Part shown: positions 12,794 through 55,171 of the stretch, piece by piece
Numbering within the stretch: position 1 is the stretch's first letter
Layout of the letters: the number at the start of each line of letters is the position of its first letter
Virus record (IMG/VR): IMGVR_UViG_3300042308_001616
Coordinates: 184,752-248,751 of that record
Reading direction: 5' to 3' (one strand)
Length of the DNA: 64,000 nt
Made by a program: the position numbers and the translations under genes
The notes under the pieces: generated by a model
Database searches by the model: none
Told to the model about the DNA's origin: nothing
The model's input: only the letters and a program-made list of their open reading frames with translations

Positions 12794-15010
12794 ATGGCAA
12801 ATTTAACACCTCAAGATTATTTCGATTTGTATGGTTCAAAAAGACCAAACTCTAATATTGTACAAACATACAGAATTAGAAAGAAAACCAATAACCATCC
12901 TAATTATCCTGGATCATTAGACCATATTGTTTATCTCGTTTTATTTGAAGGAAAATTCCTCAAAAAAAGTGAGCTATACGCTTATACTTACCTTCCAGAA
13001 TACTTTGACCTCCCAGAACAATATAACAATAAACCTGGAAAACTTGAAATTTCGGGTGTCTACAAAGGAGTAAATTTATTTATAGAAAATCCAGAAGTTG
13101 CTAATTCATTAGGAAACTGTATTACCGGTATAACCGTAAATGGAACTCAAAAACCTGGTGGCACTGGCACCACAAGAGTAGAGATAGACTTTAGTTATTT
13201 TGATGTCAAAGTAGGCGATGATATAACAATAGTAATAAATTACGATACTTCCTGTAAAATCGATGTCATAAACCCAGAAGCAGTATTGGGCACAGATGAT
13301 AATGTACAAACAAATAATATAGGAGAAATAAACGAAAGGTATAAAAAAATAAAAGAAGCAACCGAGAAAAAACTAAGTGATGAAGAATCAAAAGTTAGTA
13401 ATGAAAAGCAAGAAATCGATTTGGCAATCTACAAAATACAAAAAAAACCAAATGATCAAATAACTGATGAAGAAAAAATAGAATTACAAAATCTTAAAGA
13501 AAAAGGTATAAAAATGGGACCAGAATGGGCTAAAAGAATAGCCGATATCAAAGTAGAACTCAGTAATATTGAAAAAAATAAAATTCAAGAAATCAATAGT
13601 AATAAATCCACAATACGCGAAATTGAAAGATTAGTAATTGCCGAAAACCTACCTATAAACCTAACCGAAGTCGCAATTGATAAAATGGGTAGAAACTTTG
13701 ACAATCTATTACTAAAAGCACTAAAAATAAAAAATTCAAATTTAGAAGTTTTTGAAGACGAGTTTTATACTATAGAGGATTTTACGTTTGTTCCTAATGA
13801 ATCTATAATTGAACGAGACAAGTTATTTGGTATAGCAGATGAAATAGTTGAAGCAGCTATCAAAAACTTCAAGTATATGGATGTTGTTACAGACTATGAA
13901 ATAATACAATATCCATGGGATCCTAATGATGTTCCACCAGAAGAAACATCTGAACAAACTTTACAGGTTGTAAATCCAGAATCTGGATTTAGATCAGATG
14001 GATTTTTAAAAACTGTACGTGCACGTGGTGAATATTCAGTTAAGGTAAGTGAAAGTGGTGATAAAATAAAATTATCAGGACTGGATTTAAAATTTTTATT
14101 TCCGGATGGTATTAGAAGAGAACTTGGTGAGTTGACTTTAGTTAAGAAAGAAGATCCTAATGATCCTAATATAATAAAAATACTAGCAGAGGAATATGAA
14201 AGACAGGATGAGTTGAGTGATGAATATTTAGAGGATGAATACGTAGGTGAAGGACTTGGTACAACATTAGGTGGTACTCTTGGGGATCAGACAAAACCAG
14301 AACAAACACCAGATTATGTATCACCTTCTAATAGTGGTTCTATTAATAATGCTGGAGGCTCTAATCTTACTCCAAGTGGTCCATTACCGGTTGGTGATGA
14401 TGCAGATTGGTATTCTCTTTTAGCGGTATGTCTTTTAGAGGATGGTAATCATCCTGCAGAGGTGGCACAATGTATTTATAATAGACTCAAATGTAATTGT
14501 GGTTATGGTGGTAGGAATATTAAGCAACTTGTCACTGCAAAAAGTCAATTTCAAGTGGCATTTGAACATATTAAATGGGATACAAGTGATCCAATTAATG
14601 GTGTTATTTCTAATGAATGGAGAGCAATAAATGATTTAAATACTGCAATTATTGCAGTAAAATCTTATTATAAGAAAAGGGGAATTGATAGTGATGATCC
14701 AAGACATAGTAATTCATATGATAAAGTAAAAGCCAGATTACTTAATGTTGGTACTATATTAAAAGATAGAACTGCACAACAAAATGCATTAAATCGTGTT
14801 GGTGGACGTACTGGATTTACAGCAGCAACAGCAATAGGTGTTGAAAAAGTAGATGATAGAGGTACTTATGGATATACACGAACAATATCAACAATAAACG
14901 GAACACGAGTGTCGGGTAATTGGTATTATTGGTCTGTTGGTCTTGGTGGTTATAATTTTTATGTAACTGGTGGAAATTCACCTGCTGGAGTTCCTTCTAA
15001 TTTTTCATAA
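12794..15010 (+). CDS. Paralogous virion protein with C-terminal SleB/CwlJ-like cell-wall hydrolase domain
   Basis: First ~515 aa closely match the previous gene; C-terminus has LAVCLLED...EVAQCIYNR...IKQLVTAKSQFQ. Confidence 0.65.
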   Translation: MANLTPQDYFDLYGSKRPNSNIVQTYRIRKKTNNHPNYPGSLDHIVYLVLFEGKFLKKSELYAYTYLPEYFDLPEQYNNKPGKLEISGVYKGVNLFIENPEVANSLGNCITGITVNGTQKPGGTGTTRVEIDFSYFDVKVGDDITIVINYDTSCKIDVINPEAVLGTDDNVQTNNIGEINERYKKIKEATEKKLSDEESKVSNEKQEIDLAIYKIQKKPNDQITDEEKIELQNLKEKGIKMGPEWAKRIADIKVELSNIEKNKIQEINSNKSTIREIERLVIAENLPINLTEVAIDKMGRNFDNLLLKALKIKNSNLEVFEDEFYTIEDFTFVPNESIIERDKLFGIADEIVEAAIKNFKYMDVVTDYEIIQYPWDPNDVPPEETSEQTLQVVNPESGFRSDGFLKTVRARGEYSVKVSESGDKIKLSGLDLKFLFPDGIRRELGELTLVKKEDPNDPNIIKILAEEYERQDELSDEYLEDEYVGEGLGTTLGGTLGDQTKPEQTPDYVSPSNSGSINNAGGSNLTPSGPLPVGDDADWYSLLAVCLLEDGNHPAEVAQCIYNRLKCNCGYGGRNIKQLVTAKSQFQVAFEHIKWDTSDPINGVISNEWRAINDLNTAIIAVKSYYKKRGIDSDDPRHSNSYDKVKARLLNVGTILKDRTAQQNALNRVGGRTGFTAATAIGVEKVDDRGTYGYTRTISTINGTRVSGNWYYWSVGLGGYNFYVTGGNSPAGVPSNFS

Positions 15011-39781: not shown

Positions 39782-40189
39782 ATGTTACTACATATTGGTG
39801 ATTTAGAAATAAGCTTCTATAATGATTCACATAGTGAGAGTGTAAAAACATTGAATAAGAAAAAGATTGTAACACTCAATATAAACTTCTACATTAGTGA
39901 TGAGCCAGGTAAAGCATCATCTTCAAAAAAAGAATTAGATGAATCTATTGCATATGAAAAAATATGTAAAACCAATATGCCTATCACAATAATAACATCA
40001 AAACACAACTACAACTGGGTTTTCGAAGGAGTTAAACTAATTGATTTCGAAAAAGATTGTAAAATAAATAAATTCTTCCCCGGTAAAATAATAGAAACAA
40101 AAATGACTTTTGAATTCTCCAATTGTTATGGGACAAAAGACCTTACCGCAGCAAAGAGAACAATTACTCTAAACAAACTCGGCATATGA
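39782..40189 (+). CDS. Hypothetical protein with C-terminal tag
   Basis: Ends KRTITLNKLGI. Confidence 0.6.
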   Translation: MLLHIGDLEISFYNDSHSESVKTLNKKKIVTLNINFYISDEPGKASSSKKELDESIAYEKICKTNMPITIITSKHNYNWVFEGVKLIDFEKDCKINKFFPGKIIETKMTFEFSNCYGTKDLTAAKRTITLNKLGI

Positions 40190-40689
40190 ACAAAATCTGG
40201 ATAATAAAACCACAGTACCTCGAAGAGGTCATTATACACACCGAGGACGAACTGCACCAATGGTGCCATAACATATTCACATCGAACAAGCACCAGTTCA
40301 TGGGAAAAATAAACATAAAGGAGATAGAAATAGCGAGTGAGTCCGACATAGACTTCGATGGCTACGTAGAATCGATGATACGAAACTCCAGGATAGAGGG
40401 CCTTATCGAAGACAGTACACCATACAGAGTCGATTTAGAGGACTTCTTCAACGTAATACCCAAAGAACTTGACGACAGGATAGACTGGATAAGAAAGTGT
40501 ATTGACCTAAACGGATGGAAAGAAAGCTACTGTCGTAAAATACTCGGCACCTACAAAAGGGTATTGACTAAAACAATACCATCAAAAATAGATGAAGGAA
40601 AAAGACAAGAATACTTCGATAAACTAGCTAAGGTAAAAAACTTTGAACCAGATAATAAAGTAAATATTAACACAATCAAAATAAAATAG
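40186..40689 (+). CDS. Hypothetical protein
   Basis: ATGA overlap with previous gene; internal RNSRIEGLI. Confidence 0.6.
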   Translation: MNKIWIIKPQYLEEVIIHTEDELHQWCHNIFTSNKHQFMGKINIKEIEIASESDIDFDGYVESMIRNSRIEGLIEDSTPYRVDLEDFFNVIPKELDDRIDWIRKCIDLNGWKESYCRKILGTYKRVLTKTIPSKIDEGKRQEYFDKLAKVKNFEPDNKVNINTIKIK

Positions 40690-40750
40690 AGGTATAACAC
40701 CGCACTAAACATACGGAAAACATTCCGTATAACTAAAAAAATAGTGCAAA

Positions 40751-41050
40751 ATGAAATTCGACGAAGAGTTCAATAAAAACTTCAAAATAGGCAAATATTA
40801 CTCCTGTGAACTAACACCATACGATCCAATTTACAGATTAAAAATTCTCGAGATTGAAGAGAGATGTCTAGTACTCGACATAAACGGGCACCTACCAAAC
40901 TTCTGGCGTGACGAGGAAGATACAAAGGAACTACTAAAAGGTGATCAACCAGGCACTTATTGGCTCGATAAAGGTCTATTAGACACATTCTTCTTTGAAG
41001 ATATCGAAACCAATAGAGAACAAGCACTAAATGAAATTGGTATCAAATAA
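40751..41050 (+). CDS. Hypothetical protein with C-terminal tag
   Basis: Ends REQALNEIGIK. Confidence 0.6.
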   Translation: MKFDEEFNKNFKIGKYYSCELTPYDPIYRLKILEIEERCLVLDINGHLPNFWRDEEDTKELLKGDQPGTYWLDKGLLDTFFFEDIETNREQALNEIGIK

Positions 41051-41083
41051 AACTTATTCATTATAAATATATATAAATCAAAC

Positions 41084-41168
41084 GGAGAGTTGGCAGAGTG
41101 GTCGATTGCGGCAGTCTTGAAAACTGTTGAACCGCGAGGTTCCGTAGGTTCGAATCCTACACTCTCCG
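41084..41168 (+). tRNA. tRNA-Ser(TGA)
   Basis: Cloverleaf; gcagt-ct-TGA-aa-actgt; long variable arm. Confidence 0.92.
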
Positions 41169-41211
41169 CAAAATAAAAATAAAAAATAGTAGGATATACG
41201 AAACTTTAACG

Positions 41212-41219
41212 TATATTTG
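41212..41219 (+). promoter_or_regulatory. Bacteroidota sigma-A -7 box for tRNA operon 1
   Basis: TATATTTG matches TAnnTTTG; a TATATA late-type box follows at ~41252. Confidence 0.65.
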
Positions 41220-41267
41220 TCTTATAAAACAAAAAGGGAAGTAAAAAACTTTATATATACACTTACA

Positions 41268-41378
41268 ATGAAAGCAACAAATACAAATATGACAATCGTG
41301 AGAAACTTAATGGTGAATATTACATTATGTAATATTAGACCAAACGAGGGTTCCTGTCTATTTGTGAATGTCGCATAA
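41268..41378 (+). CDS. Putative attenuator leader peptide 1 (36 aa)
   Basis: MKATNTNMTIVRNLMVNITLCNIRPNEGSCLFVNVA; contains gagggttc (41346-41353), complementary to the terminator 5' arm. Confidence 0.8.
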   Translation: MKATNTNMTIVRNLMVNITLCNIRPNEGSCLFVNVA

Positions 41379-41400
41379 ACATTTATATAAAAGAAACTTG

Positions 41401-41433
41401 AACCCTCAGTCAAAAACTGAGGGTTTTTTGTTT
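41401..41433 (+). terminator. Attenuator terminator 1
   Basis: aaccctcagt-caaaa-actgagggtt followed by ttttgttt, directly before the tRNAs. Confidence 0.85.
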
Positions 41434-41446
41434 AACATAAAAATAC

Positions 41447-41518
41447 GGACGGGTAGCTCAGAGGCAGAGCAAAATCCTGTTAAGATTGAGGTCGAGATAT
41501 CGTAATTCTCCCCGTCCG
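41447..41518 (+). tRNA. tRNA-Asn(GTT), atypical T-loop
   Basis: aatc-ct-GTT-aa-gatt; ggacggg/cccgtcc acceptor stem. Confidence 0.8.
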
Positions 41519-41530
41519 CAAAAATAAAAT

Positions 41531-41618
41531 GGACTTGTAGCTGATAAGGTTTAGCTGGTGACTGTTAATCACTGAATGAAAAATTGAAATAAAGTAGGTT
41601 CGAATCCTACCTGGTCCG
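41531..41618 (+). tRNA. tRNA-Asn(GTT) with enlarged variable region
   Basis: gtga-ct-GTT-aa-tcac; gtagg-ttcgaat-cctac. Confidence 0.7.
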
Positions 41619-41625
41619 CAAAAAT

Positions 41626-41698
41626 GGTTCTATGATGTAACTGAATAGCATAAGCCCCTTCTAAGGGTTTCGTTGGGGTTTGAATCCCTGTAGAACTA
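41626..41698 (+). tRNA. tRNA-Arg(TCT)
   Basis: agccc-ct-TCT-aa-gggtt. Confidence 0.8.
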
Positions 41699-41704
41699 CA
41701 AAAT

Positions 41705-41777
41705 AGTTGATTAGCTCAATTGGTAGAGCACCGATCTGATACGTCGGAGGTAGTGGGATCGTAACCCGCATCAACTA
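41705..41777 (+). tRNA. tRNA-Ile(GAT)
   Basis: ccgat-ct-GAT-ac-gtcgg. Confidence 0.85.
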
Positions 41778-41787
41778 CTAAAAAAAT

Positions 41788-41858
41788 GCTTCCTTCGTAT
41801 AGAGGTATTATTCTGGATTTGTAACCCAGTGACGCCAGTTCGATCCTGGCAGGAAGCT
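41788..41858 (+). tRNA. tRNA-Thr(TGT)
   Basis: ctgga-tt-TGT-aa-cccag. Confidence 0.85.
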
Positions 41859-41865
41859 CGAAAAT

Positions 41866-41937
41866 GTTAGTGTGTCCGAATGGCTTAGGTAACCAGCTGC
41901 AACCTGGTATATGGGGGTTCAAGTCCCTCCACTAACT
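41866..41937 (+). tRNA. tRNA-Cys(GCA)
   Basis: accag-ct-GCA-ac-ctggt; U73 discriminator. Confidence 0.88.
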
Positions 41938-41946
41938 CAAACAAAC

Positions 41947-42016
41947 GCCGCGGCTTAGTGGAAAAGGATCGACCCTCATATGGTTGATTAAGTGGTTTCG
42001 AACACCATACGCGGTA
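41947..42016 (+). tRNA. tRNA-Met(CAT), atypical D-arm
   Basis: cgacc-ct-CAT-at-ggttg; gtggt-ttcgaac-accat. Confidence 0.6.
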
Positions 42017-42038
42017 CTAACTAAAAAAAATAAAAAAT

Positions 42039-42197
42039 ATGAAATTCGAAGACTACTTCAAAAGCAAGTTTCCTTTCCTGAAAGAAAGCAAGGAAAGCCA
42101 CACAATCGACATCGATTCAGACACACTCATATACCTGGTACAGGACTTCATCGACGGGGAAAGAAGCAGAGAAGACCAATCGAAGGCATTCGAGTAA
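42039..42197 (+). CDS. Small hypothetical protein (52 aa) inside the tRNA operon
   Basis: MKFEDYFKSKFPFLKES...KAFE; A-rich leader. Confidence 0.55.
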   Translation: MKFEDYFKSKFPFLKESKESHTIDIDSDTLIYLVQDFIDGERSREDQSKAFE

Positions 42198-42204
42198 AAG
42201 AAAC

Positions 42205-42277
42205 AGGGGATTAGCTCAATCGGGAGAGCGTTAGACTTACATTCTAAAGGTAGCGGGATCGTAACCCGCATTCCCTA
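42205..42277 (+). tRNA. tRNA-Val(TAC)
   Basis: ttaga-ct-TAC-at-tctaa. Confidence 0.85.
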
Positions 42278-42281
42278 CTAG

Positions 42282-42366
42282 GCACCAGTGGTGAAACTGG
42301 AGATACACGCTGCGCTTAAACCGCAGTCCTAAATACGGGTTGAGGGTTCGAGTCCCTCCTGGTGCA
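42282..42366 (+). tRNA. tRNA-Leu(TAA)
   Basis: ctgcg-ct-TAA-ac-cgcag; long variable arm. Confidence 0.9.
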
Positions 42367-42400
42367 CAAAAAAAATAGAACAAAAAAAAATAGAAAACAC

Positions 42401-42462
42401 TTTGATATCAAAAATAAATACCTATCTTTGATGAACGATAACAACAAAAGGTCTTTGAAATA
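42401..42462 (+). promoter_or_regulatory. Sigma-A promoter (-33 TTTG, -7 TATCTTTG) followed by a boxA-like element
   Basis: TTTG 42401, TATCTTTG 42423, ggtctttgaaa 42450. Confidence 0.7.
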
Positions 42463-42568
42463 CTAAAATAAAAACTTAAACGAACAAAGTAAAAAACTCG
42501 TACCGACTCTTTACTGAGAGGTACATGTATATTAGAAGGCTGGTAAAGATCCAGAATGTTCGTTTTAT

Positions 42569-42649
42569 GCACTTGTGGTGGAATGGTAGACACGTATGCC
42601 TTAGGAGCATATGTCGAAAGGCGTGCGAGTTCGAGTCTCGCCAAGTGTA
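42569..42649 (+). tRNA. tRNA-Leu(TAG)
   Basis: tatgc-ct-TAG-ga-gcata. Confidence 0.9.
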
Positions 42650-42780
42650 CAAACCCTGCTTTGAAGTAAACAGATAACAATAACTATAGAGTAGTTTAGT
42701 TCATGTAAAAATAAAAGGAAGTCATGCCACCTTTGTTGTTATAATCCACAGTCAAGAGTGGAGTTGTTTATAGAGAAGAT

Positions 42781-42854
<74 letters not shown>

Positions 42855-42935
42855 CAAATAAGTAGAGAGAACCAGTAGCACGCGGCTCGGTCCAGTATCA
42901 GTCATAATGCTAGAATACGTCATACTCTACTTAAC

Positions 42936-43008
42936 GGAGGTGAGGTCAAACGGTTAAGATGTCTGCCTGTCACGCAGTTCGGAGCGGGTTCAACTCCCGT
43001 CACTTCCG
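42936..43008 (+). tRNA. tRNA-Asp(GTC)
   Basis: ctgc-ct-GTC-ac-gcag. Confidence 0.88.
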
Positions 43009-43126
43009 CGCTAGCAAGTATTTGACGAAATCTTTAATAAGTCAAAATACTTTGAAAACACCCAAGTGGTTAAAGAACCTTCAACCTGGTAAACGGTGGA
43101 GAGAGGTACCCAAGCTCTCATTTTTT

Positions 43127-43200
43127 TCTCCCTTAGCTCAGTTGGTTAGAGCATCTGACTGTTAATCAGAGGGTCTCAGGTTCAAGTCCTGAAGGGAGAG
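43127..43200 (+). tRNA. tRNA-Asn(GTT)
   Basis: tctga-ct-GTT-aa-tcaga. Confidence 0.93.
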
Positions 43201-43206
43201 CTAAAT

Positions 43207-43278
43207 GGTTCCGTGGTGAAAGGGATATCACTAGAGATTTCTAATCTCTCGTTCCTGGTTCGAATCCAGGCGGAATCA
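43207..43278 (+). tRNA. tRNA-Arg(TCT)
   Basis: agaga-tt-TCT-aa-tctct. Confidence 0.88.
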
Positions 43279-43284
43279 CAAAAT

Positions 43285-43357
43285 GCCGTCATAGCTCAGT
43301 TGGTAGAGCGTTACCTTGGTATGGTAAAGGTCATCGGTTCGAGCCCGATTGGTGGCT
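43285..43357 (+). tRNA. tRNA-Thr(GGT)
   Basis: ttacc-tt-GGT-at-ggtaa. Confidence 0.9.
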
Positions 43358-43377
43358 CTGAAAAAAGTTCTAAAAAG

Positions 43378-43432
43378 TTTGGTGAAACAAAAAGAATCAC
43401 TAACTTTGTAAAACAAAAGAGATCTTTGACAT
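43378..43432 (+). promoter_or_regulatory. Sigma-A promoter followed by a boxA-like element
   Basis: TTTG 43378, TAACTTTG 43401, gatctttgacat 43421. Confidence 0.7.
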
Positions 43433-43452
43433 AATAACAAAATAACAAAAAC

Positions 43453-43524
43453 GGCACCATAGTTCAAGGGATAGAATAGAAGTTTCCTAAACTTTAGATC
43501 CAGGTTCGAATCCTGGTGGAGTCA
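43453..43524 (+). tRNA. tRNA-Arg(CCT)
   Basis: gaagt-tt-CCT-aa-acttt. Confidence 0.88.
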
Positions 43525-43535
43525 CTAAAAAAAGA

Positions 43536-43588
43536 TTTGGTAGATTCAAAAACTATACTTATCTTTGAAAACAAAACGTTCATTGAAT
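43536..43588 (+). promoter_or_regulatory. Sigma-A promoter followed by a boxA-like element
   Basis: TTTG 43536, TATCTTTG 43560, cgttcattgaat 43577. Confidence 0.7.
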
Positions 43589-43594
43589 AAAAAA

Positions 43595-43676
43595 GGCCTT
43601 GTGTTGGAAATGGTAGACAAGCACGTTTGAGGGGCGTGTGCCGAATGGCGTATGGGTTCAAGTCCCATCAAGGTCA
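43595..43676 (+). tRNA. tRNA-Leu(GAG)
   Basis: cacgt-tt-GAG-gg-gcgtg. Confidence 0.9.
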
Positions 43677-43724
43677 CAAAAGAATGCTCAGGCAACCCCC
43701 TGGTAAAAGCATTCGAAAATATAT

Positions 43725-43796
43725 TGCGGGATGGGGGAGTGGTCACCCCGCTGGGCTCATAACCCAGAGACATTGGTTCGAATCCTTTTCCCGCTA
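43725..43796 (+). tRNA. Initiator tRNA-fMet(CAT)
   Basis: ctggg-ct-CAT-aa-cccag (three G:C pairs); unpaired 1:72. Confidence 0.8.
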
Positions 43797-43903
43797 CAAA
43801 AATCCAGGCAACCCCCTGGTAGAAACAGAATGCTCAGGCAACCCCCTGGTAAAAAGCATTCAAAAAAATCAACCCGAAAGGCACAGGTTCGAATATATAG
43901 TAT

Positions 43904-44539
43904 ATGAGAAAATGTGAAAATTGTGAAACTGAACACACGGGTGAGTACAAATCTGGTAGATTTTGTTCTTTGAAATGTTCGAAATCGTTTAGCACCAAAT
44001 GCAAACGAAATGAGATAAACGAAGCAGTATCTGTAAAACTTACAGGAAGGGGTAATCCTCCAGTATCAAAAGAGTGTAAAAATTGTAACAATACATTCGA
44101 AGTTGAGTGGAGAAAAAGAAAGCAACTATTCTGTGGCAGATCGTGTACAACATCGTATAAAAATAAAACGATGAATATGGCAAGTCTGGGAGGTCTCAAA
44201 AGCGCAACTTCACAATCAAGAAGAAGCAAAAATGAGATTTTATTTTACGAAATGTGCTTAGAAAAGTTCCCCGATTCATTGGCAAACGAGCCAATTTTTG
44301 ATGGATGGGACGGAGATATAATCATTCCTTCTAAAAAAGTTGCAATACTTTGGAATGGTGTTTGGCACTACAAACAGATTTCTAAATCACAAAGTCTGAA
44401 ACAAGTACAGACACGTGATAAAATAAAAATCGAAAAGATTACACAATACGGATTTGTTCCGTATATTGTAAAAGATTTAGGAAAACACAATCCAACCTTC
44501 GTAAAAGAAGAGTTTGATAAGTTTCTAAAAGCTCTTTGA
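43904..44539 (+). CDS. Zinc-finger plus PD-(D/E)xK/Vsr-like endonuclease, probable free-standing homing endonuclease
   Basis: CENC...FCSLKC and CKNC...FCGRSC; SKNE, DGDII, ILWNGVWHY, RDKIK. Confidence 0.7.
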   Translation: MRKCENCETEHTGEYKSGRFCSLKCSKSFSTKCKRNEINEAVSVKLTGRGNPPVSKECKNCNNTFEVEWRKRKQLFCGRSCTTSYKNKTMNMASLGGLKSATSQSRRSKNEILFYEMCLEKFPDSLANEPIFDGWDGDIIIPSKKVAILWNGVWHYKQISKSQSLKQVQTRDKIKIEKITQYGFVPYIVKDLGKHNPTFVKEEFDKFLKAL

Positions 44540-44549
44540 AATGTTATAT

Positions 44550-44632
44550 TGGAAGGTGGCAGAGTGGTTAAATGCGTTTGACTGTAAATCAAATCTCGTG
44601 AGAGTACGGGGGTTCAAATCCCTCCCTTCCAA
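44550..44632 (+). tRNA. tRNA-Tyr(GTA)
   Basis: tttga-ct-GTA-aa-tcaaa; long variable arm. Confidence 0.9.
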
Positions 44633-44682
44633 CAAAGCTCAGGACTAATTACCCTGTAGCCTGGATGGTTCGAAACATCCGA

Positions 44683-44789
44683 TTTGATATGGTGTACTGG
44701 GCACGACACCCGCCGCTGAGGTTCGAATCCTCAGGTTCGGAATGGTTACCACGGGAGTAAGATTGGGTTCGATCCCCTTTATCACACCA
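44683..44789 (+). ncRNA. tRNA-like RNA with anticodon loop replaced by a structured insert
   Basis: tgata/tatca acceptor ending CCA, gtgt/acac D-stem, ggg-ttcgatc-ccc T-arm. Confidence 0.4.
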
Positions 44790-44885
44790 AAAGACCAGAC
44801 AACCCTCTGGCAGCAACGCTAACACAGCACAATGCGGGCTCATACCTGCGGCGTAGTGTGACGGTCAGGAGAGACTGACAACTTT

Positions 44886-44962
44886 GGGGCTATAGCTCAG
44901 TTGGCTAGAGTACTTGCCTGGCAGGCAAGGGGTCGCCGGTTCGAGCCCGGCTAGCTCCACCA
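44886..44962 (+). tRNA. tRNA-Ala(GGC)
   Basis: cttgc-ct-GGC-ag-gcaag; G3:U70; encoded CCA. Confidence 0.93.
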
Positions 44963-44996
44963 ACAAAACATTCTTACAACGGTAAGATATATATAC

Positions 44997-45067
44997 ACGG
45001 GTATAGTGAAATGGTATCATGCCGGTCTCCAAAACCGTTGTTCCGAGTTCGAATCTTGGTACCCGTG
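44997..45067 (+). tRNA. tRNA-Trp(CCA)
   Basis: cggt-ct-CCA-aa-accg. Confidence 0.88.
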
Positions 45068-45127
45068 CTAGATTAGTAATCGATAGGATGGAGGGAATAG
45101 CCATGTGTCGACAATGTTAATCTGTAA

Positions 45128-45201
45128 GGTCTTGTAACTCAGTTGGTTAGAGTGCGTCGCTCATAACGATGAAGTCGGGGGTTCGAGTCCCTCCTGGACC
45201 A
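45128..45201 (+). tRNA. tRNA with CAT anticodon (Ile2 or elongator Met)
   Basis: cgtcg-ct-CAT-aa-cgatg. Confidence 0.85.
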
Positions 45202-45323
45202 CACCAGTATCTGGCACTCACGATGTTGAGTGCCATTTACATTTAAGTGAGAATTAGGATAAATATCAAAAAAATGTCTATATTTACAAAACAAAGAGTA
45301 ACAAACTTTATATATAACTAATA

Positions 45324-45422
45324 ATGAAAACTTTTAACACAAATATCGCAGTATTAAACATCCCGCAGGATCAGGATCAACCTAAGTTACTTGGGACTAA
45401 CTGTATATTGTCAAAAAGTTAA
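45324..45422 (+). CDS. Putative attenuator leader peptide 2 (32 aa)
   Basis: MKTFNTNIAVLNIPQDQDQPKLLGTNCILSKS; actaactg (45396-45403) is complementary to the terminator 5' arm. Confidence 0.8.
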   Translation: MKTFNTNIAVLNIPQDQDQPKLLGTNCILSKS

Positions 45423-45440
45423 ATAAAAAGCTTAAATGAT

Positions 45441-45478
45441 AAACCCAGTTAGTAACTACTAACTGGGTTTTTTCGTTT
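45441..45478 (+). terminator. Attenuator terminator 2
   Basis: aaacccagttagt-aact-actaactgggttt followed by tttcgttt, directly before tRNA-Gln. Confidence 0.85.
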
Positions 45479-45484
45479 ATATAA

Positions 45485-45557
45485 TGTCCCGTGGTGTAAT
45501 TGGCAACACGTCTGATTTTGGTTCAGAAGAGTCCAGGTTCGACCCCTGGCGGGACAA
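45485..45557 (+). tRNA. tRNA-Gln(TTG)
   Basis: tctga-tt-TTG-gt-tcaga. Confidence 0.92.
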
Positions 45558-45570
45558 CAAAAAAGTTATT

Positions 45571-45642
45571 GGTTCTGTCGTCCAATGGTAGGATAGCCCG
45601 TTGTCTGCGGGATGGTTGCGGGTTCGAGTCCCGTCAGAACCG
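45571..45642 (+). tRNA. tRNA-Asp(GTC)
   Basis: cccg-tt-GTC-tg-cggg; G73. Confidence 0.85.
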
Positions 45643-45653
45643 CTAAAATATAA

Positions 45654-45726
45654 CTAGGTGTAGCTCAGATGGTAGAGCGGGGAGTTTGGGACTCTCAGGC
45701 CGCAGGTTCGACCCCTGTCACTTAGA
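45654..45726 (+). tRNA. tRNA-Pro(TGG)
   Basis: ggag-tt-TGG-ga-ctct; C1:G72, A73. Confidence 0.88.
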
Positions 45727-45732
45727 CAAAAA

Positions 45733-46169
45733 CGAGTAGTAGAGGAGTGGTTTATCTCGGTTTTTTTTAATATAATAAAATATATTTAATATATAATAAA
45801 AATAAAAAATTGTAATATGAAGAATATTAAAACATTTGGTAGTTTCATAAATGAAAGTGATGAAAATATTGATGACTATGAAATTACAACAAACAATGAA
45901 ATAGAAGGAAGGCCTTGTGTAGATTTCAATCCAACAGAATTACATCCAAATGATATAATTTATAGAAAATTAGTTGATGTTGTCAATTATCGTTCAAATT
46001 GGTATAAACATAAGAATAACATACCTAATATTGATGATTTATCTAGCTATTCTAAACCAGAAGGATTTAAAGTCATTTCAAATGATGGTAAAATTCTTAA
46101 ATTAGAGGATAAAGGCTTTATTAATAAAGTGTAAGCATCAGCACGTGAGTTCGATTCCCACCTTCTCGA
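45733..46169 (+). pseudogene. tRNA (Pro-like) split by an inserted gene
   Basis: 5' half cgagtag-ta-gagg...tctc at 45733-45760; 3' half gtgag-ttcgatt-cccac-cttctcg-a at 46135-46169. Confidence 0.65.
45817..46134 (+). CDS. Inserted hypothetical protein with capsid-targeting-like N-terminus
   Basis: Starts MKNIKTFGSFINES; own AATATATA box at 45788. Confidence 0.7.
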   Translation: MKNIKTFGSFINESDENIDDYEITTNNEIEGRPCVDFNPTELHPNDIIYRKLVDVVNYRSNWYKHKNNIPNIDDLSSYSKPEGFKVISNDGKILKLEDKGFINKV

Positions 46170-46175
46170 CAATAC

Positions 46176-46248
46176 GGATGTGAGGTCAAACGGTTAAGAT
46201 GTCTGCCTGTCACGCAGTTCGGAGCGGGTTCAACTCCCGTCACGTCCG
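46176..46248 (+). tRNA. tRNA-Asp(GTC), near-duplicate of the copy at 42936
   Basis: Identical apart from one acceptor-stem pair. Confidence 0.88.
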
Positions 46249-46256
46249 CTAATAGA

Positions 46257-46286
46257 AAATGCCACTAAATATTTAGTGGCATTTTT
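46257..46286. terminator. Terminator closing tRNA operon 2
   Basis: aaatgccactaaat-atttagtggcattt followed by T tract. Confidence 0.8.
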
Positions 46287-46319
46287 ATTTAAGTAATTTT
46301 TATTATGCATTATTATCAG

Positions 46320-46829
46320 TTATTCCCACGGATAATTTACAAAAGTTTCACCTGTAACTAATACTTGAGTATCCGGTGTATTACCAGATACACTAAAGTC
46401 ACTAGGTATTGTTATTATCAATTCATAATTTACTGGTATATCTAAATAAGGAATACCGAATTCATCTTTTTTAGTAACATATTTTTGAAATTGAGGTGCA
46501 CTAAATAAGTTAAGAGGAATAAGTTGTACTTTACTACCCGAATTTGCAGCAAGAGTAATAGTTGCTAGTTTAAAAGCTCCATTTGAGTTTTCAGGTGTTG
46601 GTAAAGTGTACTGGCTAGATACTCCACTTACCAGAGGAGCATCCGCTGGATTGCGTAAAAAAATCGTAATAGTTCTTTTACCCGTATTGATTGTAGTTAT
46701 ATCAATACCATAAATTCTTCTTATCTGATTTGAATTCTGATTTAAAACCACTTTTGTCCAAAACATATTATTATTATTTTTCCAATAATCAGTTTTTTGA
46801 AAAAACGGAATGCTTACTGCTGATGACAT
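46320..46829 (-). CDS. Hypothetical protein
   Basis: ORF track; late box upstream. Confidence 0.6.
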   Translation of the reverse strand: MSSAVSIPFFQKTDYWKNNNNMFWTKVVLNQNSNQIRRIYGIDITTINTGKRTITIFLRNPADAPLVSGVSSQYTLPTPENSNGAFKLATITLAANSGSKVQLIPLNLFSAPQFQKYVTKKDEFGIPYLDIPVNYELIITIPSDFSVSGNTPDTQVLVTGETFVNYPWE

Positions 46830-46931
46830 ATTTTTTTTTATTTTTTTAGTATGTAATTTCTACCTACTTATTATATATTAAAAATAATATATAAAATATC
46901 GTTTATCGAATACTAAATAAAAAATAAAAAA

Positions 46932-47816
46932 ATGCCGAATTGGTACAATCGATGGGGAAAAGCAATAGCTGGTGTTGTTCCTTATAAAAGACCTAAAAAA
47001 AGAGGTGAAAATGTATTACCTGGTGGATCAACATTCTCTGCTCCTGCAACTGGACAATATGATAGTGGTGAAATCAGTGTATCCATAACTTCTGATATTG
47101 AGGGAAATCCGTGGGTAACTGCAATTAACTCAACAAAATATACAGTAATTGATGCACCATTTATTGCTATGGTATGGGCATATGATGGTAAAAATAGACC
47201 TGCACATTTCCCCACTCCTCAACCATCCACAAGCCAACTTCGAACTTATGATTTTGCAACTGCATTTAGACCAGAAACACCATGGAATGGTATTGTAAAA
47301 ATCAAAGTATACACGAACTTATTAGCAACGGTGGATGAATTTGGTGATCCTGTTGGTGGTGGTGAAATTAGATTGAACGCGGTTGGTCAAAGTTACTACC
47401 ACGATATATTAGATGGAACACCTATTAATAATGCTGAAAGTAACTCTAAAATGTTATTCAGACTATATCCGAATAATGTTATAACTGGAACACCTACTAC
47501 TGGTAGTACTCCATACACATCTGCAAATATAGGTGACCCAGGTACAATATGGACAGAAAAAGTTGCATTTACAGATGATAATTCAGATGTTAGTTTAGAT
47601 GGTGATAATATTAACACAATTGTACAAGGTACATTTATAGGTAATAAAACATTAGGTAATGAAACATACACAGGTACCTACCCTGCAAATTATACAGGTG
47701 AACAAGTAGAAAAATTCTATTCATCTTTTATTTCATTCCAATTCCAGCCATTATCATACTTCAATTACGGTAACATACCTGATTTCAAATTTAGATTTAT
47801 AATAGAATATTATTAA
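46932..47816 (+). CDS. Hypothetical beta-rich protein
   Basis: ORF track; terminator follows. Confidence 0.6.
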   Translation: MPNWYNRWGKAIAGVVPYKRPKKRGENVLPGGSTFSAPATGQYDSGEISVSITSDIEGNPWVTAINSTKYTVIDAPFIAMVWAYDGKNRPAHFPTPQPSTSQLRTYDFATAFRPETPWNGIVKIKVYTNLLATVDEFGDPVGGGEIRLNAVGQSYYHDILDGTPINNAESNSKMLFRLYPNNVITGTPTTGSTPYTSANIGDPGTIWTEKVAFTDDNSDVSLDGDNINTIVQGTFIGNKTLGNETYTGTYPANYTGEQVEKFYSSFISFQFQPLSYFNYGNIPDFKFRFIIEYY

Positions 47817-53638: not shown

Positions 53639-55171
53639 ATGTTTAGACCAACATCATTGTATTACACAGACGGCTACAAGATTGGCCACAAAGCGATGCT
53701 CGCAGAAGGAACTGACTTCCTTTATGGAACATGGATTCCACGTTCTACAAAACACGCACCAAAAGGTATCAATAAAATTGTATCATTTGGACAACAACTA
53801 ACTTGGCGATGGATTCATGACGAATTCACTGAAAACTTTTTCAACAAGCCAGTTGAAGAAGCTATATCATTCGTTGAAGATATGAGTATGTATTTAGGTA
53901 TGGAATTTAATGGAGATCACTTTATCGCTCTTCACAAATTAGGTTACTTACCAATTAGAACAAAAGCTCTTCCTGAGGGTATTGAGACAAGACCGAACGT
54001 GCCACATATGACGTTCATCAACACAAAGAAAGGATACGCTTGGCTTACTCTTTTCTTAGAGACAATCGTGTCATCTTTGGCGTGGAAACCTGCAACATCC
54101 GCAACAATCGCACTTAAGTACAACCGAAACCTTTACGAGTGGGTACTAAAGACAGACCCTACTAACGCTTGGTTGATTCCTTTCTTAGCACACGACTTCT
54201 CAGCACGTGGTATCGATCCTTGGACGATGGTTTCATCTGGCTTAGGACACGCTACGTCATTTAGAGGTTCTGATACTATTGTAGTTATTCCAGCGGCTCG
54301 TTACTTCTATGGTGAGCCTAAGAATGAAGTTTGTATCAACTCTGTAAATGCATCTGAGCACTCTGTATCTACTACCAAAATTTTTACCGTTGGTGAGAAA
54401 CAAATGTTAATCGATTGGATGAACAAATTTGATAAAGGTATTTTGTCAGTAGTAATGGACACATTTGACATTACAAAAGTTGCTAAACCATCTGAAGGTG
54501 GATATTGTTTCGATTTGAAAGACCAAATCTTATCTCGTGATGGTAAGTTAGTTATTCGTCCTGACTCTGGAGATCCAGTTGAAATCATCTGTGGACACGG
54601 AAGAACTGAATTAACAGATAATGAGAACCGCGCATTCTATCCTGAGTTCTACACAAAAGGATTGATTGAGTGTTTATGGGACATCTTTGGTGGAACAATC
54701 AACGAACAAGGATATAAAGTCTTAGACCCACACATCGGTGCCATTTACGGTGACTCTATTACGACCGATCGTCAGGTTCAAATCTATGAGAGATTAGCAG
54801 AGAAAGGTTTTGCAGCTACGAACATTGTTTTAGGTGTAGGTTCTTATACTTACCAATACAATACGCGTGATACATTTGGATTTGCAGCGAAAGGTGCTTG
54901 GTTCGAAGAGAATGGAGTTCAACACGATATCTACAAAGATCCAATCTCAGATGATGGAACTAAGAAGTCATTGAAAGGACTTATCTCGGTTCACGAAACA
55001 GAAGATGGTGACCACTCAGTAGGTGTACAATGTACAATTGATGAAGAGAAAGAAGGAATCCTTCAGGTTATCTACCAAGATGGTAAGTTTTACAACGAAA
55101 CCACACTGACAGAGATTAGAGGTAAAATTGAGGTTCTCGCTAAAAGTGGAACCGAAACAGTTTTAGCATAA
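53639..55171 (+). CDS. Nicotinamide phosphoribosyltransferase-like enzyme (Namat/NadV candidate)
   Basis: TDGYKIGH, HDFSARG, GSDT, ASEHS, SVVMDT, VIRPDSGDP, IYGDSI, TRDT, KKSLKG. Confidence 0.9.
   Translation: MFRPTSLYYTDGYKIGHKAMLAEGTDFLYGTWIPRSTKHAPKGINKIVSFGQQLTWRWIHDEFTENFFNKPVEEAISFVEDMSMYLGMEFNGDHFIALHKLGYLPIRTKALPEGIETRPNVPHMTFINTKKGYAWLTLFLETIVSSLAWKPATSATIALKYNRNLYEWVLKTDPTNAWLIPFLAHDFSARGIDPWTMVSSGLGHATSFRGSDTIVVIPAARYFYGEPKNEVCINSVNASEHSVSTTKIFTVGEKQMLIDWMNKFDKGILSVVMDTFDITKVAKPSEGGYCFDLKDQILSRDGKLVIRPDSGDPVEIICGHGRTELTDNENRAFYPEFYTKGLIECLWDIFGGTINEQGYKVLDPHIGAIYGDSITTDRQVQIYERLAEKGFAATNIVLGVGSYTYQYNTRDTFGFAAKGAWFEENGVQHDIYKDPISDDGTKKSLKGLISVHETEDGDHSVGVQCTIDEEKEGILQVIYQDGKFYNETTLTEIRGKIEVLAKSGTETVLA

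Follow-up and report, generated by a model that had tools for sequence, protein, structure and literature searches.

A huge freshwater phage places a small open reading frame and a transcription terminator in front of tRNA genes, and this small gene carries a run of codons read by the tRNAs encoded directly downstream. We interpret this organization as ribosome-mediated (leader-peptide) transcription attenuation of the trp type, redeployed to give feedback control of phage tRNA supply, such that the phage probably makes each tRNA set only when that tRNA runs short. This interpretation is likely on the basis of sequence and comparative evidence, in the absence of experimental or transcript data, and our literature searches yielded no description of leader-peptide control of tRNA genes. 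The analyzed stretch of DNA (hereafter the window) comprises 64,000 nucleotides of IMG/VR virus record IMGVR_UViG_3300042308_001616 (positions 184,752 to 248,751) and contains two such units, among about 10 tRNA blocks. Their features, all on the plus strand, are as follows.

41212-41219 (+), TATATTTG box of unit 1, preceded by AACTTT at 41202-41207.
41246-41259 (+), AAACTTTATATATA element of unit 1.
41268-41378 (+), leader ORF 1 of 36 codons; codons 4-24 use only Thr, Asn, Met, Ile, Val, Arg(AGA), Leu and Cys codons.
41346-41353 (+), antiterminator strand GAGGGTTC of unit 1, pairing with GAACCCTC at 41400-41407.
41400-41431 (+), intrinsic terminator of unit 1, an 11-bp stem at 41400-41426 followed by a T run.
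41447-41938 (+), first tRNA block of unit 1: Asn, Asn, Arg(TCT), Ile(GAT), Thr(TGT), Cys(GCA); more tRNAs follow up to 45202 with no terminator detected in between.
45212-45235 (+), terminator-like hairpin after tRNA-Met(CAT), a 9-bp stem with 5 G-C pairs and a weak T tail.
45279-45286 (+), TATATTTA, the inferred promoter box of unit 2.
45303-45316 (+), AAACTTTATATATA, a conserved element 7-8 nt before the leader ATG.
45324-45422 (+), leader ORF 2 of 32 codons, ATG to TAA.
45363-45383 (+), sensor codons CCG CAG GAT CAG GAT CAA CCT (Pro-Gln-Asp-Gln-Asp-Gln-Pro).
45396-45403 (+), antiterminator strand ACTAACTG, an exact copy of the first 8 nt of the terminator's 3' arm, pairing with 45446-45453.
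45441-45473 (+), intrinsic terminator of unit 2, a 13-bp stem at 45441-45470 (-17.7 kcal/mol) with a 4-nt loop and a T run to 45473.
45485-45727 (+), the putatively regulated genes: tRNA-Gln(TTG) at 45485-45558, tRNA-Asp(GTC) at 45571-45643 and tRNA-Pro(TGG) at 45654-45727.

The terminator of unit 2 lies 18 bases after the stop codon of leader ORF 2, and its stem ends 14 nt before tRNA-Gln. The antiterminator strand ACTAACTG is complementary to CAGTTAGT (45446-45453) in the 5' arm of the terminator, while AGTTACT at 45385-45391 is complementary to AGTAACT at 45452-45458. A tRNA 3' remnant (46135-46172) and a second tRNA-Asp(GTC) (46176-46249) follow further downstream. The broken tRNA carries an ORF-bearing insertion (45763-46134) for which no Rfam intron match was found. 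The hairpin at 45212-45235 probably closes the preceding tRNA transcription unit, which would make unit 2 a separate unit. The TATATTTA box is replaced by TATATTTG in most relatives, which would fit a Bacteroidota -7 consensus of TAnnTTTG. The box is conserved 37-50 nt upstream of the leader ATG in most units, although its promoter function is inferred. The only other exact copy of AAACTTTATATATA in the window is the one in front of leader 1. The element is conserved as AACTNTATATATA in most units and absent from a few (L163_L1, L222_L1; L followed by a number denotes a locus and the suffix a unit), and could be a translation-initiation context or a second promoter-like site.

All sequence features of unit 2 given in a preliminary description, which proposed a leader-peptide attenuator with sensory codons matching the downstream tRNAs, were confirmed, including the similar start of both leaders (MKTFNTN in leader 2, MKATNTN in leader 1). 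Two points needed correction. First, the claim that Asp is absent from operon 1 is not safe, since a tRNA-Asp(GTC) lies at 42936-43009 and no terminator was found by our scan between 41427 and 45212. That tRNA may therefore belong to unit 1, although leader 1 itself does lack Q and D. Second, the codon match of leader 2 to its three tRNAs is not significant over the whole ORF, as 25% of background windows do as well. The signal resides in the contiguous run: a run of seven residues drawn only from Q, D and P occurred in 0 of 18,017 background windows of the same length taken from phage proteins.

To find related units, we first searched by near-identity with the tRNA region against GenBank phages, which gave only tRNA-sized matches and no close relative. 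In an initial motif search only L006, L008 (the window itself) and L010 had tRNAs downstream, which was solved by a stricter two-part motif. In total, we found about 30 units of the same build in at least 14 contigs, including three published huge Bacteroidetes phages (LR756502.1, LR745206.1, and LR756504.1, of which only 200, 50 and 50 kb were read). A scan of genome contigs with the same motif gave 14 hits, none with tRNAs, and no bacterial or prophage copy was found in this way. Four unrelated tRNA-rich phage loci (L018, L028, L034, L083) served as controls, and none has a short ORF plus terminator in front of a tRNA block. In nearly every unit the ORF stop lies 18-33 nt before a strong terminator, which in most units ends 7-22 nt before the first tRNA, leaving no room for a separate promoter. 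A few units have a longer gap or a small ORF inserted there. In unit 2, a TATAAT just before tRNA-Gln (45478-45483) was rejected as a σ70-type promoter because a start about 7 nt downstream would fall inside the tRNA.

The units fall into 11 leader classes, each enriched in the codons read by its own downstream tRNAs: PQDQDQP before Gln/Asp/Pro, QQQQQQQ before four tRNA-Gln, DQDQPD before Pro/Asp, KHKHF..KWF before Lys/His/Phe/Trp, SSSRSSS before Arg(ACG)/Ser, SSSSSHVSV before Ser/Ser/Val/His, FSFPFP before Pro/Phe, TITIITTIKKAIK before Ala/Lys/CAU/Thr, IETIGYTGYEGAY before Glu/Tyr, GVIAIGAG before Ile(UAU)/Gly, and LSLCLSLSLSL before Leu/Ser/Cys. Relatives thus carry units for the tRNAs that are missing here (Lys, Glu, Gly, His, Phe), for which the preliminary description had suggested looking elsewhere in the genome. 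For 7 classes, the true leader-to-cluster assignment is the best of 5040 permutations at both the codon and the amino-acid level. With 10 classes, 0 of 1,000,000 random permutations reach it. Using the 7-residue window score (column-centred), every leader's own cluster ranks first, whereas two of the ten rank second by whole-ORF fraction. The leaders also contain non-cognate codons, and CCT needs four-way wobble by tRNA-Pro(UGG). The correspondence extends to the choice of codon. Arg is AGA where the tRNA is Arg(UCU) and CGC/CGT where it is Arg(ACG), Ile is ATC/ATT with Ile(GAU) and ATA with Ile(UAU) or a CAU tRNA, and Ser is AGT with Ser(GCU) and TCA/TCG with Ser(UGA). The leader predicts tRNA identity: its ATA codons flag CAU-anticodon tRNAs as probable tRNA-Ile2, and leaders revealed class-II Ser tRNAs that ARAGORN missed.

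Homologues of leader ORF 2 with frame, start and stop conserved occur in L010, L163, L174, L186, L203, L204, L221 and L222, and homologues of leader ORF 1 in L177, L163, L222, L218, L237 and L238. We tested whether PQDQDQP is lost in relatives that keep the same tRNAs, and this was not the case. Nine leader 2 homologues from separate contigs keep Q-D-Q-D-Q-P invariant, with synonymous CAA/CAG changes at two Gln positions, while the four residues that follow vary freely.

The antiterminator duplex is significant in the leader 1 (L1) family (-14.7 to -17.5 kcal/mol, P<=0.006), with -14.8 kcal/mol and P=0 in 500 shuffles for unit 1, as well as in L006_B (-16.5, P=0), in L006_C and in the KH unit (P=0.014). 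In unit 2 itself the antiterminator is short (8 bp, -9.7 kcal/mol, P=0.08 against shuffles), and in one relative, L174, the terminator has been replaced by one with which the ORF no longer pairs well (-3.4 kcal/mol). Antiterminator and terminator covary. In the L1 family matched length changes occur, with GAGGGTC, GAGGGTTC and GAGGGTTTC pairing with GACCCTC, GAACCCTC and GAAACCCTC. In the leader 2 (L2) family the A-T pair at 45400:45449 becomes G-C in four relatives with the matching change in the terminator, a three-way compensatory change that also changes the peptide (Asn to Ser). The latter rests on one variable position in four closely related sequences.

We then masked a 28-nt ribosome footprint at each A-site position in turn. 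The probability that the terminator's 5' arm is held by the antiterminator stays high through the sensor run and drops within a few codons after it; the sensor run ends where a stalled ribosome would start to hide the antiterminator. The drop is sharp in most of the 20 units tested, but shallower in unit 2 of the window, where it falls only from 76% to 47-60%, and in three others (L163_L2, L238_PD, L239_KH). With no ribosome the antiterminator is predicted to form (43-92% in most units; 26% and 40% in L237_EY and L239_KH), and the default state therefore looks 'on'. In the L1 family a ribosome parked at the stop codon leaves the antiterminator free, and it is unclear how termination is secured there.

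In the proposed sequence of events, transcription starts about 40 nt upstream of leader ORF 2 and a ribosome loads on the nascent RNA. Codons 14-20 would be read quickly only if charged tRNA-Pro, tRNA-Gln and tRNA-Asp are available. If one of them is scarce, possibly due to a codon-usage mismatch with the host, loss of host tRNA during infection or host anticodon nucleases, the ribosome would pause on this run with its footprint ending just short of ACTAACTG, which pairs with CAGTTAGT as soon as the polymerase has made it. The 13-bp terminator then cannot form, and the polymerase runs on into tRNA-Gln, tRNA-Asp and tRNA-Pro. If the three tRNAs are plentiful, the ribosome moves over ACTAACTG towards the stop codon while the terminator is being made, the hairpin and U run form, and transcription stops. 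New tRNA would relieve the pause, making the circuit a negative-feedback regulator of tRNA supply. Unit 1 (41212-41431) and about 28 further units in related huge phages presumably work the same way, each with a different codon set.

A broader reading, which we regard as probable, is that a clade of huge phages infecting Bacteroidota runs a modular, self-regulating tRNA supply system. In this view almost every tRNA cluster is gated by its own leader peptide, whose codons form a barcode of that cluster's anticodons, although only 2 of about 10 tRNA blocks in the window carry such a unit. Each cluster would be transcribed on demand when its particular charged tRNAs fall short during infection, for instance upon attack by host anticodon nucleases, and shut off once supply is restored. 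Leader codons and tRNA gene content would co-evolve; for example, where the Gln tRNAs split off into their own cluster, they would have acquired a seven-Gln leader. This would be the first attenuator whose regulated product is the molecule it senses, and the first demand-sensing control of viral tRNA genes. Why phages carry tRNA genes has been debated for about 50 years, with codon compensation, replacement of degraded host tRNA and escape from anticodon nucleases as candidates. A built-in sensor would show that the phage treats tRNA supply as a variable to be measured and corrected, and the leaders would give a direct readout of which codons the phage expects to become limiting. It would extend leader-peptide attenuation to non-coding RNA genes, to viruses, to Bacteroidota and to multi-amino-acid sensors, and the units would form a natural set of orthogonal parts, each responsive to a specific tRNA.

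Alternative explanations appear unlikely to different degrees. The units may read general translation status rather than specific tRNA supply, in which case any slowing of ribosomes (host shut-off, amino-acid starvation, ribosome-targeting defence) would uncouple ribosome and polymerase and open all the tRNA clusters together, the codon match being a secondary tuning or a historical trace. The predicted antiterminated state without a ribosome in most units tested agrees with this, as any loss of translation would give read-through, and all leaders share a similar start (M-K/R-T-I/F-N). However, a general sensor would not need eleven leader classes that each match their own cluster down to the choice of anticodon, nor would it keep QDQDQP invariant. 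It is more doubtful that the polarity is reversed, with stalling favouring termination so that a cluster is transcribed only when its tRNAs are already decoding well (feed-forward control or a timing device). The polarity is inferred, and the antiterminator is free again with a ribosome at the stop codon in the L1 family, but in every unit tested the sensor run ends just upstream of the point where a stalled ribosome would begin to cover the antiterminator, the geometry expected for read-through upon stalling. The reverse polarity would shut off tRNA genes exactly when their tRNAs are lacking. Translation-independent sensing, in which the triplets pair directly with tRNA anticodons as a T-box specifier does, is improbable: the output is the same as in T-box leaders, but in all of about 30 units the triplets lie in frame within an ATG-to-stop ORF with a conserved start context, synonymous CAA/CAG changes are tolerated, and the run-to-antiterminator spacing matches a ribosome footprint. 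Coincidence, with an ordinary small gene or no gene at all, a hairpin that is simply its terminator and tRNAs expressed constitutively from elsewhere, is strongly disfavoured by the rarity of the Q/D/P run, the recurrence of the architecture with matched content, the lack of room for a promoter and the absence of such units from unrelated tRNA-rich phage loci, even though short ORFs are abundant in AT-rich DNA and leader 2 is not significantly enriched over its whole length.

Among known systems, the tRNA repertoires of huge phages of the Mahaphage clade have been catalogued (PMC7162821), in a text that contains neither 'leader' nor 'attenuat'. The phage belongs to the same clade, LR756502.1 and LR745206.1 being its closest GenBank relatives with about 69% amino-acid identity in a helicase, and both carry homologous units. 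Phage tRNA arrays have also been described as counter-defence or codon compensation (T5 and others; PMC10264068, PMC11555353), replacing host tRNAs that are depleted or cleaved during infection. Full-text searches covering these papers found no mention of a demand-sensing control of tRNA expression, whereas here such clusters carry their own sensor. T-box riboswitches (Rfam RF00230) likewise sense tRNA status and switch between a terminator and an antiterminator upstream of translation-related genes, but bind uncharged tRNA directly through a specifier codon and the T-box sequence, with no ribosome and no ORF. An Rfam covariance-model scan of 40000-47000 at E<=1 returned tRNAs plus a few weak sub-threshold matches to unrelated families, with no T-box, no amino-acid operon leader (His, Leu, Thr, Trp) and no other known cis-regulatory leader among them. 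The pheST (pheM leader) attenuator of E. coli is also placed in front of a component of the translation apparatus that handles the same amino acid as the sensor codons, but it is bacterial, senses a single amino acid and controls an aminoacyl-tRNA synthetase rather than tRNA genes.

The leader-peptide attenuators of amino-acid biosynthetic operons (trp, his, leu, thr, ilv, and pheA of Proteobacteria) share with the present units a short ORF with a run of regulatory codons, a subsequent intrinsic terminator and an alternative antiterminator helix that uses the terminator's 5' arm. In these systems ribosome position chooses between the two folds, and shortage of charged tRNA gives read-through, as we propose here. 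No clear 1:2 anti-antiterminator is seen in the present units, judged from predicted folds only (the minimum-energy fold of unit 2 pairs the 45347-45365 region with the 45390-45404 region, but the partition-function folds predict that the antiterminator forms without a ribosome), so the default state may be 'on', unlike trp, where the 1:2 pairing gives termination without translation. The antiterminator strand lies inside the ORF and not after the stop codon, and the sensors are multi-amino-acid barcodes matched to the composition of each cluster. The regulated genes are tRNA genes instead of the amino-acid biosynthesis or aminoacyl-tRNA synthetase genes of the classical scope, so the product is the sensed molecule itself, and the units are encoded by a virus, with many occurring in a single genome.

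The 248,751-bp viral contig to which the window belongs (IMGVR_UViG_3300042308_001616; locus L008 is the same DNA) derives from a phage that is found in lake and river metagenomes. Its closest GenBank relatives are the 642-kb and 635-kb uncultured phages LR756502.1 and LR745206.1, with about 69% amino-acid identity in a helicase. The published description places the genomes above 634 kb in the Mahaphage clade and predicts Bacteroidetes hosts for them (PMC7162821). The window holds 26 tRNA genes at 41084-46249, all on the + strand. It also encodes a nicotinate phosphoribosyltransferase-family protein at 53639-55171 (Pfam PF04095, E=1e-29), which points to NAD salvage.

All features of the second unit listed in the preliminary description were confirmed at their positions:
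45279-45286, the box TATATTTA
45303-45316, the element AAACTTTATATATA, with its only other exact copy at 41246-41259
45324-45422, an ORF of 32 codons
45363-45383, the codons CCG CAG GAT CAG GAT CAA CCT
45396-45403, the strand ACTAACTG
45441-45470, a 13-bp terminator with a T run
Starting 14 nt after the terminator, tRNA-Gln(TTG), tRNA-Asp(GTC) and tRNA-Pro(TGG)

The assignment of the upstream box as a promoter is an inference from the Bacteroidota consensus, presumably TAnnTTTG. At 41202-41219 and in relatives, the upstream promoter region has the extended form AAACTTT-N4-5-TATATTTG, which in the window occurs only at leader 1, and the 5'-UTR element AAACTTTATATATA looks like a compressed second copy of it. 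In the related contig L222, a tRNA-Met(CAT) at 2738-2810 sits between the promoter-like box and the leader-1 ORF, so that a tRNA would be transcribed ahead of the attenuator, and this leader lacks the AAACTTTATATATA element.

A run of seven residues drawn only from Q, D and P was found in none of 18,017 background windows of equal length taken from phage proteins, although over the whole ORF the match is unremarkable. One claim of the preliminary description, namely that Asp is absent from the first operon, is doubtful. A tRNA-Asp(GTC) lies at 42936-43009 and no terminator was detected between 41427 and 45212, and Asp may therefore belong to unit 1. The spacers between tRNA sub-blocks (42395-42470, 43030-43060, 43400-43440 and 43560-43580) carry repeated (T)CTTTGA / ACTTTG motifs that resemble the Bacteroidota -7 box and may be internal promoters, in which case only the first tRNAs after leader 1 would be under attenuator control. 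The tRNA-Asp(GTC) at 42936-43009 is nearly identical to a second copy at 46176-46249, and both matched one place in LR745206.1 at 98% identity. The second copy lies beyond an inserted ORF and is followed by a terminator-like hairpin at about 46261-46285.

The tRNA array contains further irregularities. A tRNA gene appears to be split between 45735-45762 and 46135-46172: a 5' acceptor/D-arm-like piece (starting CGAGTAGTAG, like the tRNA-Pro of the related contig L006) sits just after tRNA-Pro, while a T-arm/acceptor 3' piece follows directly after the stop codon of a 105-aa ORF of unknown function (45817-46134), which lies in a very AT-rich insert. No PHROG hit and no intron match in Rfam were found. 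Small ORFs are interspersed in the array (43904-44539, 42039-42197 and 40751-41050), one of which is an HNH endonuclease (PHROG 1271, E=5e-9). In relatives, similar small ORFs are inserted between a leader's terminator and its tRNAs (loci L237, about 21382, and L241, about 23577) or replace the leader (loci L164 and L195). Three copies of a short hairpin-forming repeat (CAGGCAACCCCCTGG) at 43686-43705, 43805-43823 and 43833-43852 flank the tRNA-Met at 43725-43797, and a similar CAGACAACCCTCTGG lies at about 44798. The second tRNA-Asn (41531-41619) is 89 nt long and has an unusual insertion, and several tRNA-like remnants (T-arm-like GGTTCGAA motifs; 41950-42022 and 44640-44790) were called by neither ARAGORN nor Rfam.

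An exact-pattern scan of viral contigs revealed two related contigs, L010 and L006, and a stricter two-part pattern run on metagenome contigs revealed L163, L174, L177, L186, L203, L204, L218, L221 and L222. The DNA upstream of every tRNA block was then screened with a motif-free script that looks for a terminator within 130 nt and an ORF ending just before it, and the same script was applied to 300 kb of three GenBank huge phages (LR756502.1, LR745206.1 and LR756504.1). We found about 30 units in at least 14 contigs. All have the same build, with a short ORF, its stop codon, in nearly every unit, 18-33 nt before a strong hairpin with a T run and, in most units, the first tRNA 7-22 nt after that hairpin. 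They fall into 11 leader classes.

Leader classes, given as sensor run; tRNAs that follow; where found (L numbers denote related contigs or loci).
N/T/I/V/R/L/M/C-rich; Asn, Arg(UCU), Ile(GAU), Thr, Cys, Val, Leu; window unit 1, L177, L163, L222, L218, L237, L238
PQDQDQP; Gln, Asp, Pro; window unit 2 and eight homologues
QQQQQQQ (a separate Pro/Asp unit in the same genome has DQDQPD); four tRNA-Gln; LR756502.1
KHKHF..KWF; Lys, His, Phe, Trp; L163, LR756502.1
SSSRSSS; Arg(ACG), several Ser; L163, L222, LR756502.1
SSSSSHVSV; Ser(UGA), Ser(GCU), Val, His; L006
FSFPFP; Pro, Phe; L006
TITIITTIKKAIK; Ala, Lys, a CAU tRNA, Thr; L006
IETIGYTGYEGAY; Glu, Tyr; LR756502.1
GVIAIGAG; Ile(UAU), Gly; LR756502.1
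LSLCLSLSLSL; Leu, Ser, Cys; LR756504.1

ARAGORN missed several class-II Ser tRNAs in these phages (L006 2501-2594; L163 3440-3522 and about 3535; L222 277-361, 367-453, 464-549 and about 553). They were recovered with Rfam and by direct reading, and they improved the match. Rfam scored some of them just above the tRNA-Sec threshold, although their anticodons read TGA, GCT or GGA, which are Ser anticodons. Unrelated tRNA-rich phage loci, analyzed as controls, lack such units, and no bacterial genome among those scanned carries one with this motif.

For seven independent classes, the true leader-to-cluster assignment scores best of all 5040 permutations, at both the codon and the amino-acid level, and for ten classes none of 1,000,000 random permutations reaches it. 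With a 7-residue window score (column-centred), each leader's own cluster ranks first, whereas by whole-ORF fraction two of the ten rank second. The match extends to the choice of anticodon: AGA appears with Arg(UCU) and CGC/CGT with Arg(ACG), ATC/ATT with Ile(GAU) and ATA with Ile(UAU) or a CAU tRNA, and AGT with Ser(GCU) and TCA/TCG with Ser(UGA). In L006, a tRNA called Met(CAT) (13089-13163, - strand) follows a leader (ATG at 13496, - strand) with six ATA (Ile) codons and no internal ATG. The leader content therefore predicts that it is tRNA-Ile2 with a lysidine-modified anticodon.

In nine homologues of leader 2, Q-D-Q-D-Q-P is invariant and two Gln positions alternate between CAA and CAG, while the four residues after the run vary widely (I/K/Q, A/L/V, F/I/L/N and E/G). 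Loss of PQDQDQP in relatives that keep the tRNAs, which the preliminary description had named as evidence against its interpretation, was not observed.

The strand ACTAACTG inside the ORF is an exact copy of the start of the terminator's 3' arm and pairs with the 5' arm. In four relatives the ORF reads ACTAGCTG, the 5' arm CAGCTAG and the 3' arm CTAGCTG. This three-way compensatory change also alters the peptide from Asn to Ser, which points to selection on the RNA at that position. In the unit-1 family, GAGGGTC, GAGGGTTC and GAGGGTTTC in the ORF pair with GACCCTC, GAACCCTC and GAAACCCTC in the terminator, and the encoded residue changes among R, S and F. Duplex energies were compared with 500 dinucleotide shuffles and beat them in the unit-1 family (P<=0.006), in unit L006_B of contig L006 (P=0), and in unit L006_C of the same contig and the KH unit (P=0.014). 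They are only marginal for the unit-2 family (P=0.01-0.37, excluding L174), and the antiterminator of unit 2 is weak on its own. Contig L174 has a replaced terminator that its ORF no longer pairs with well.

Each leader was folded up to the terminator loop while a 28-nt ribosome footprint was forced to be unpaired at each successive A-site codon. The probability that the terminator's 5' arm is held by upstream sequence stays high while the A site is on or before the sensor run, and it drops within a few codons after the last sensor codon in all 20 units tested. In the seven-Gln leader, for example, it is 92% through the last Gln, 57% one codon later, and 5% after that. In the window's own unit 2 the drop is shallower, from 76% to 47-60%, while in its homologue in L204 it goes from 63% to 4-20%. 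Three further units (L163_L2, L238_PD and L239_KH) also show only modest drops. This placement is what read-through upon stalling requires. Without a ribosome, however, the antiterminator is predicted to form in most units, indicating that the default state may be 'on', and in the unit-1 family a ribosome at the stop codon leaves the antiterminator free.

The best reading of these sequence and folding data, in the absence of transcript or functional data, is ribosome-mediated attenuation that reports the supply of the cognate charged tRNAs and gates transcription of the matching tRNA genes. Because the product relieves the stall, the circuit would be a negative-feedback loop. Plausible triggers are a codon-usage mismatch with the host, decay of host tRNA during infection, and host anticodon nucleases, the last of which phage tRNAs are known to counter (PMC10264068; PMC11555353).

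Full-text literature searches and a search of the huge-phage paper (PMC7162821) revealed no description of such a system. It is not a T-box and matches no Rfam leader family. On the reading proposed here, it works like the trp, his, leu, thr and pheA attenuators, fulfilling most structural criteria of that class, and is most like pheST in its logic. Its regulated genes, however, are tRNA genes in a virus, the sensors are multi-amino-acid barcodes, and the antiterminator lies inside the ORF.
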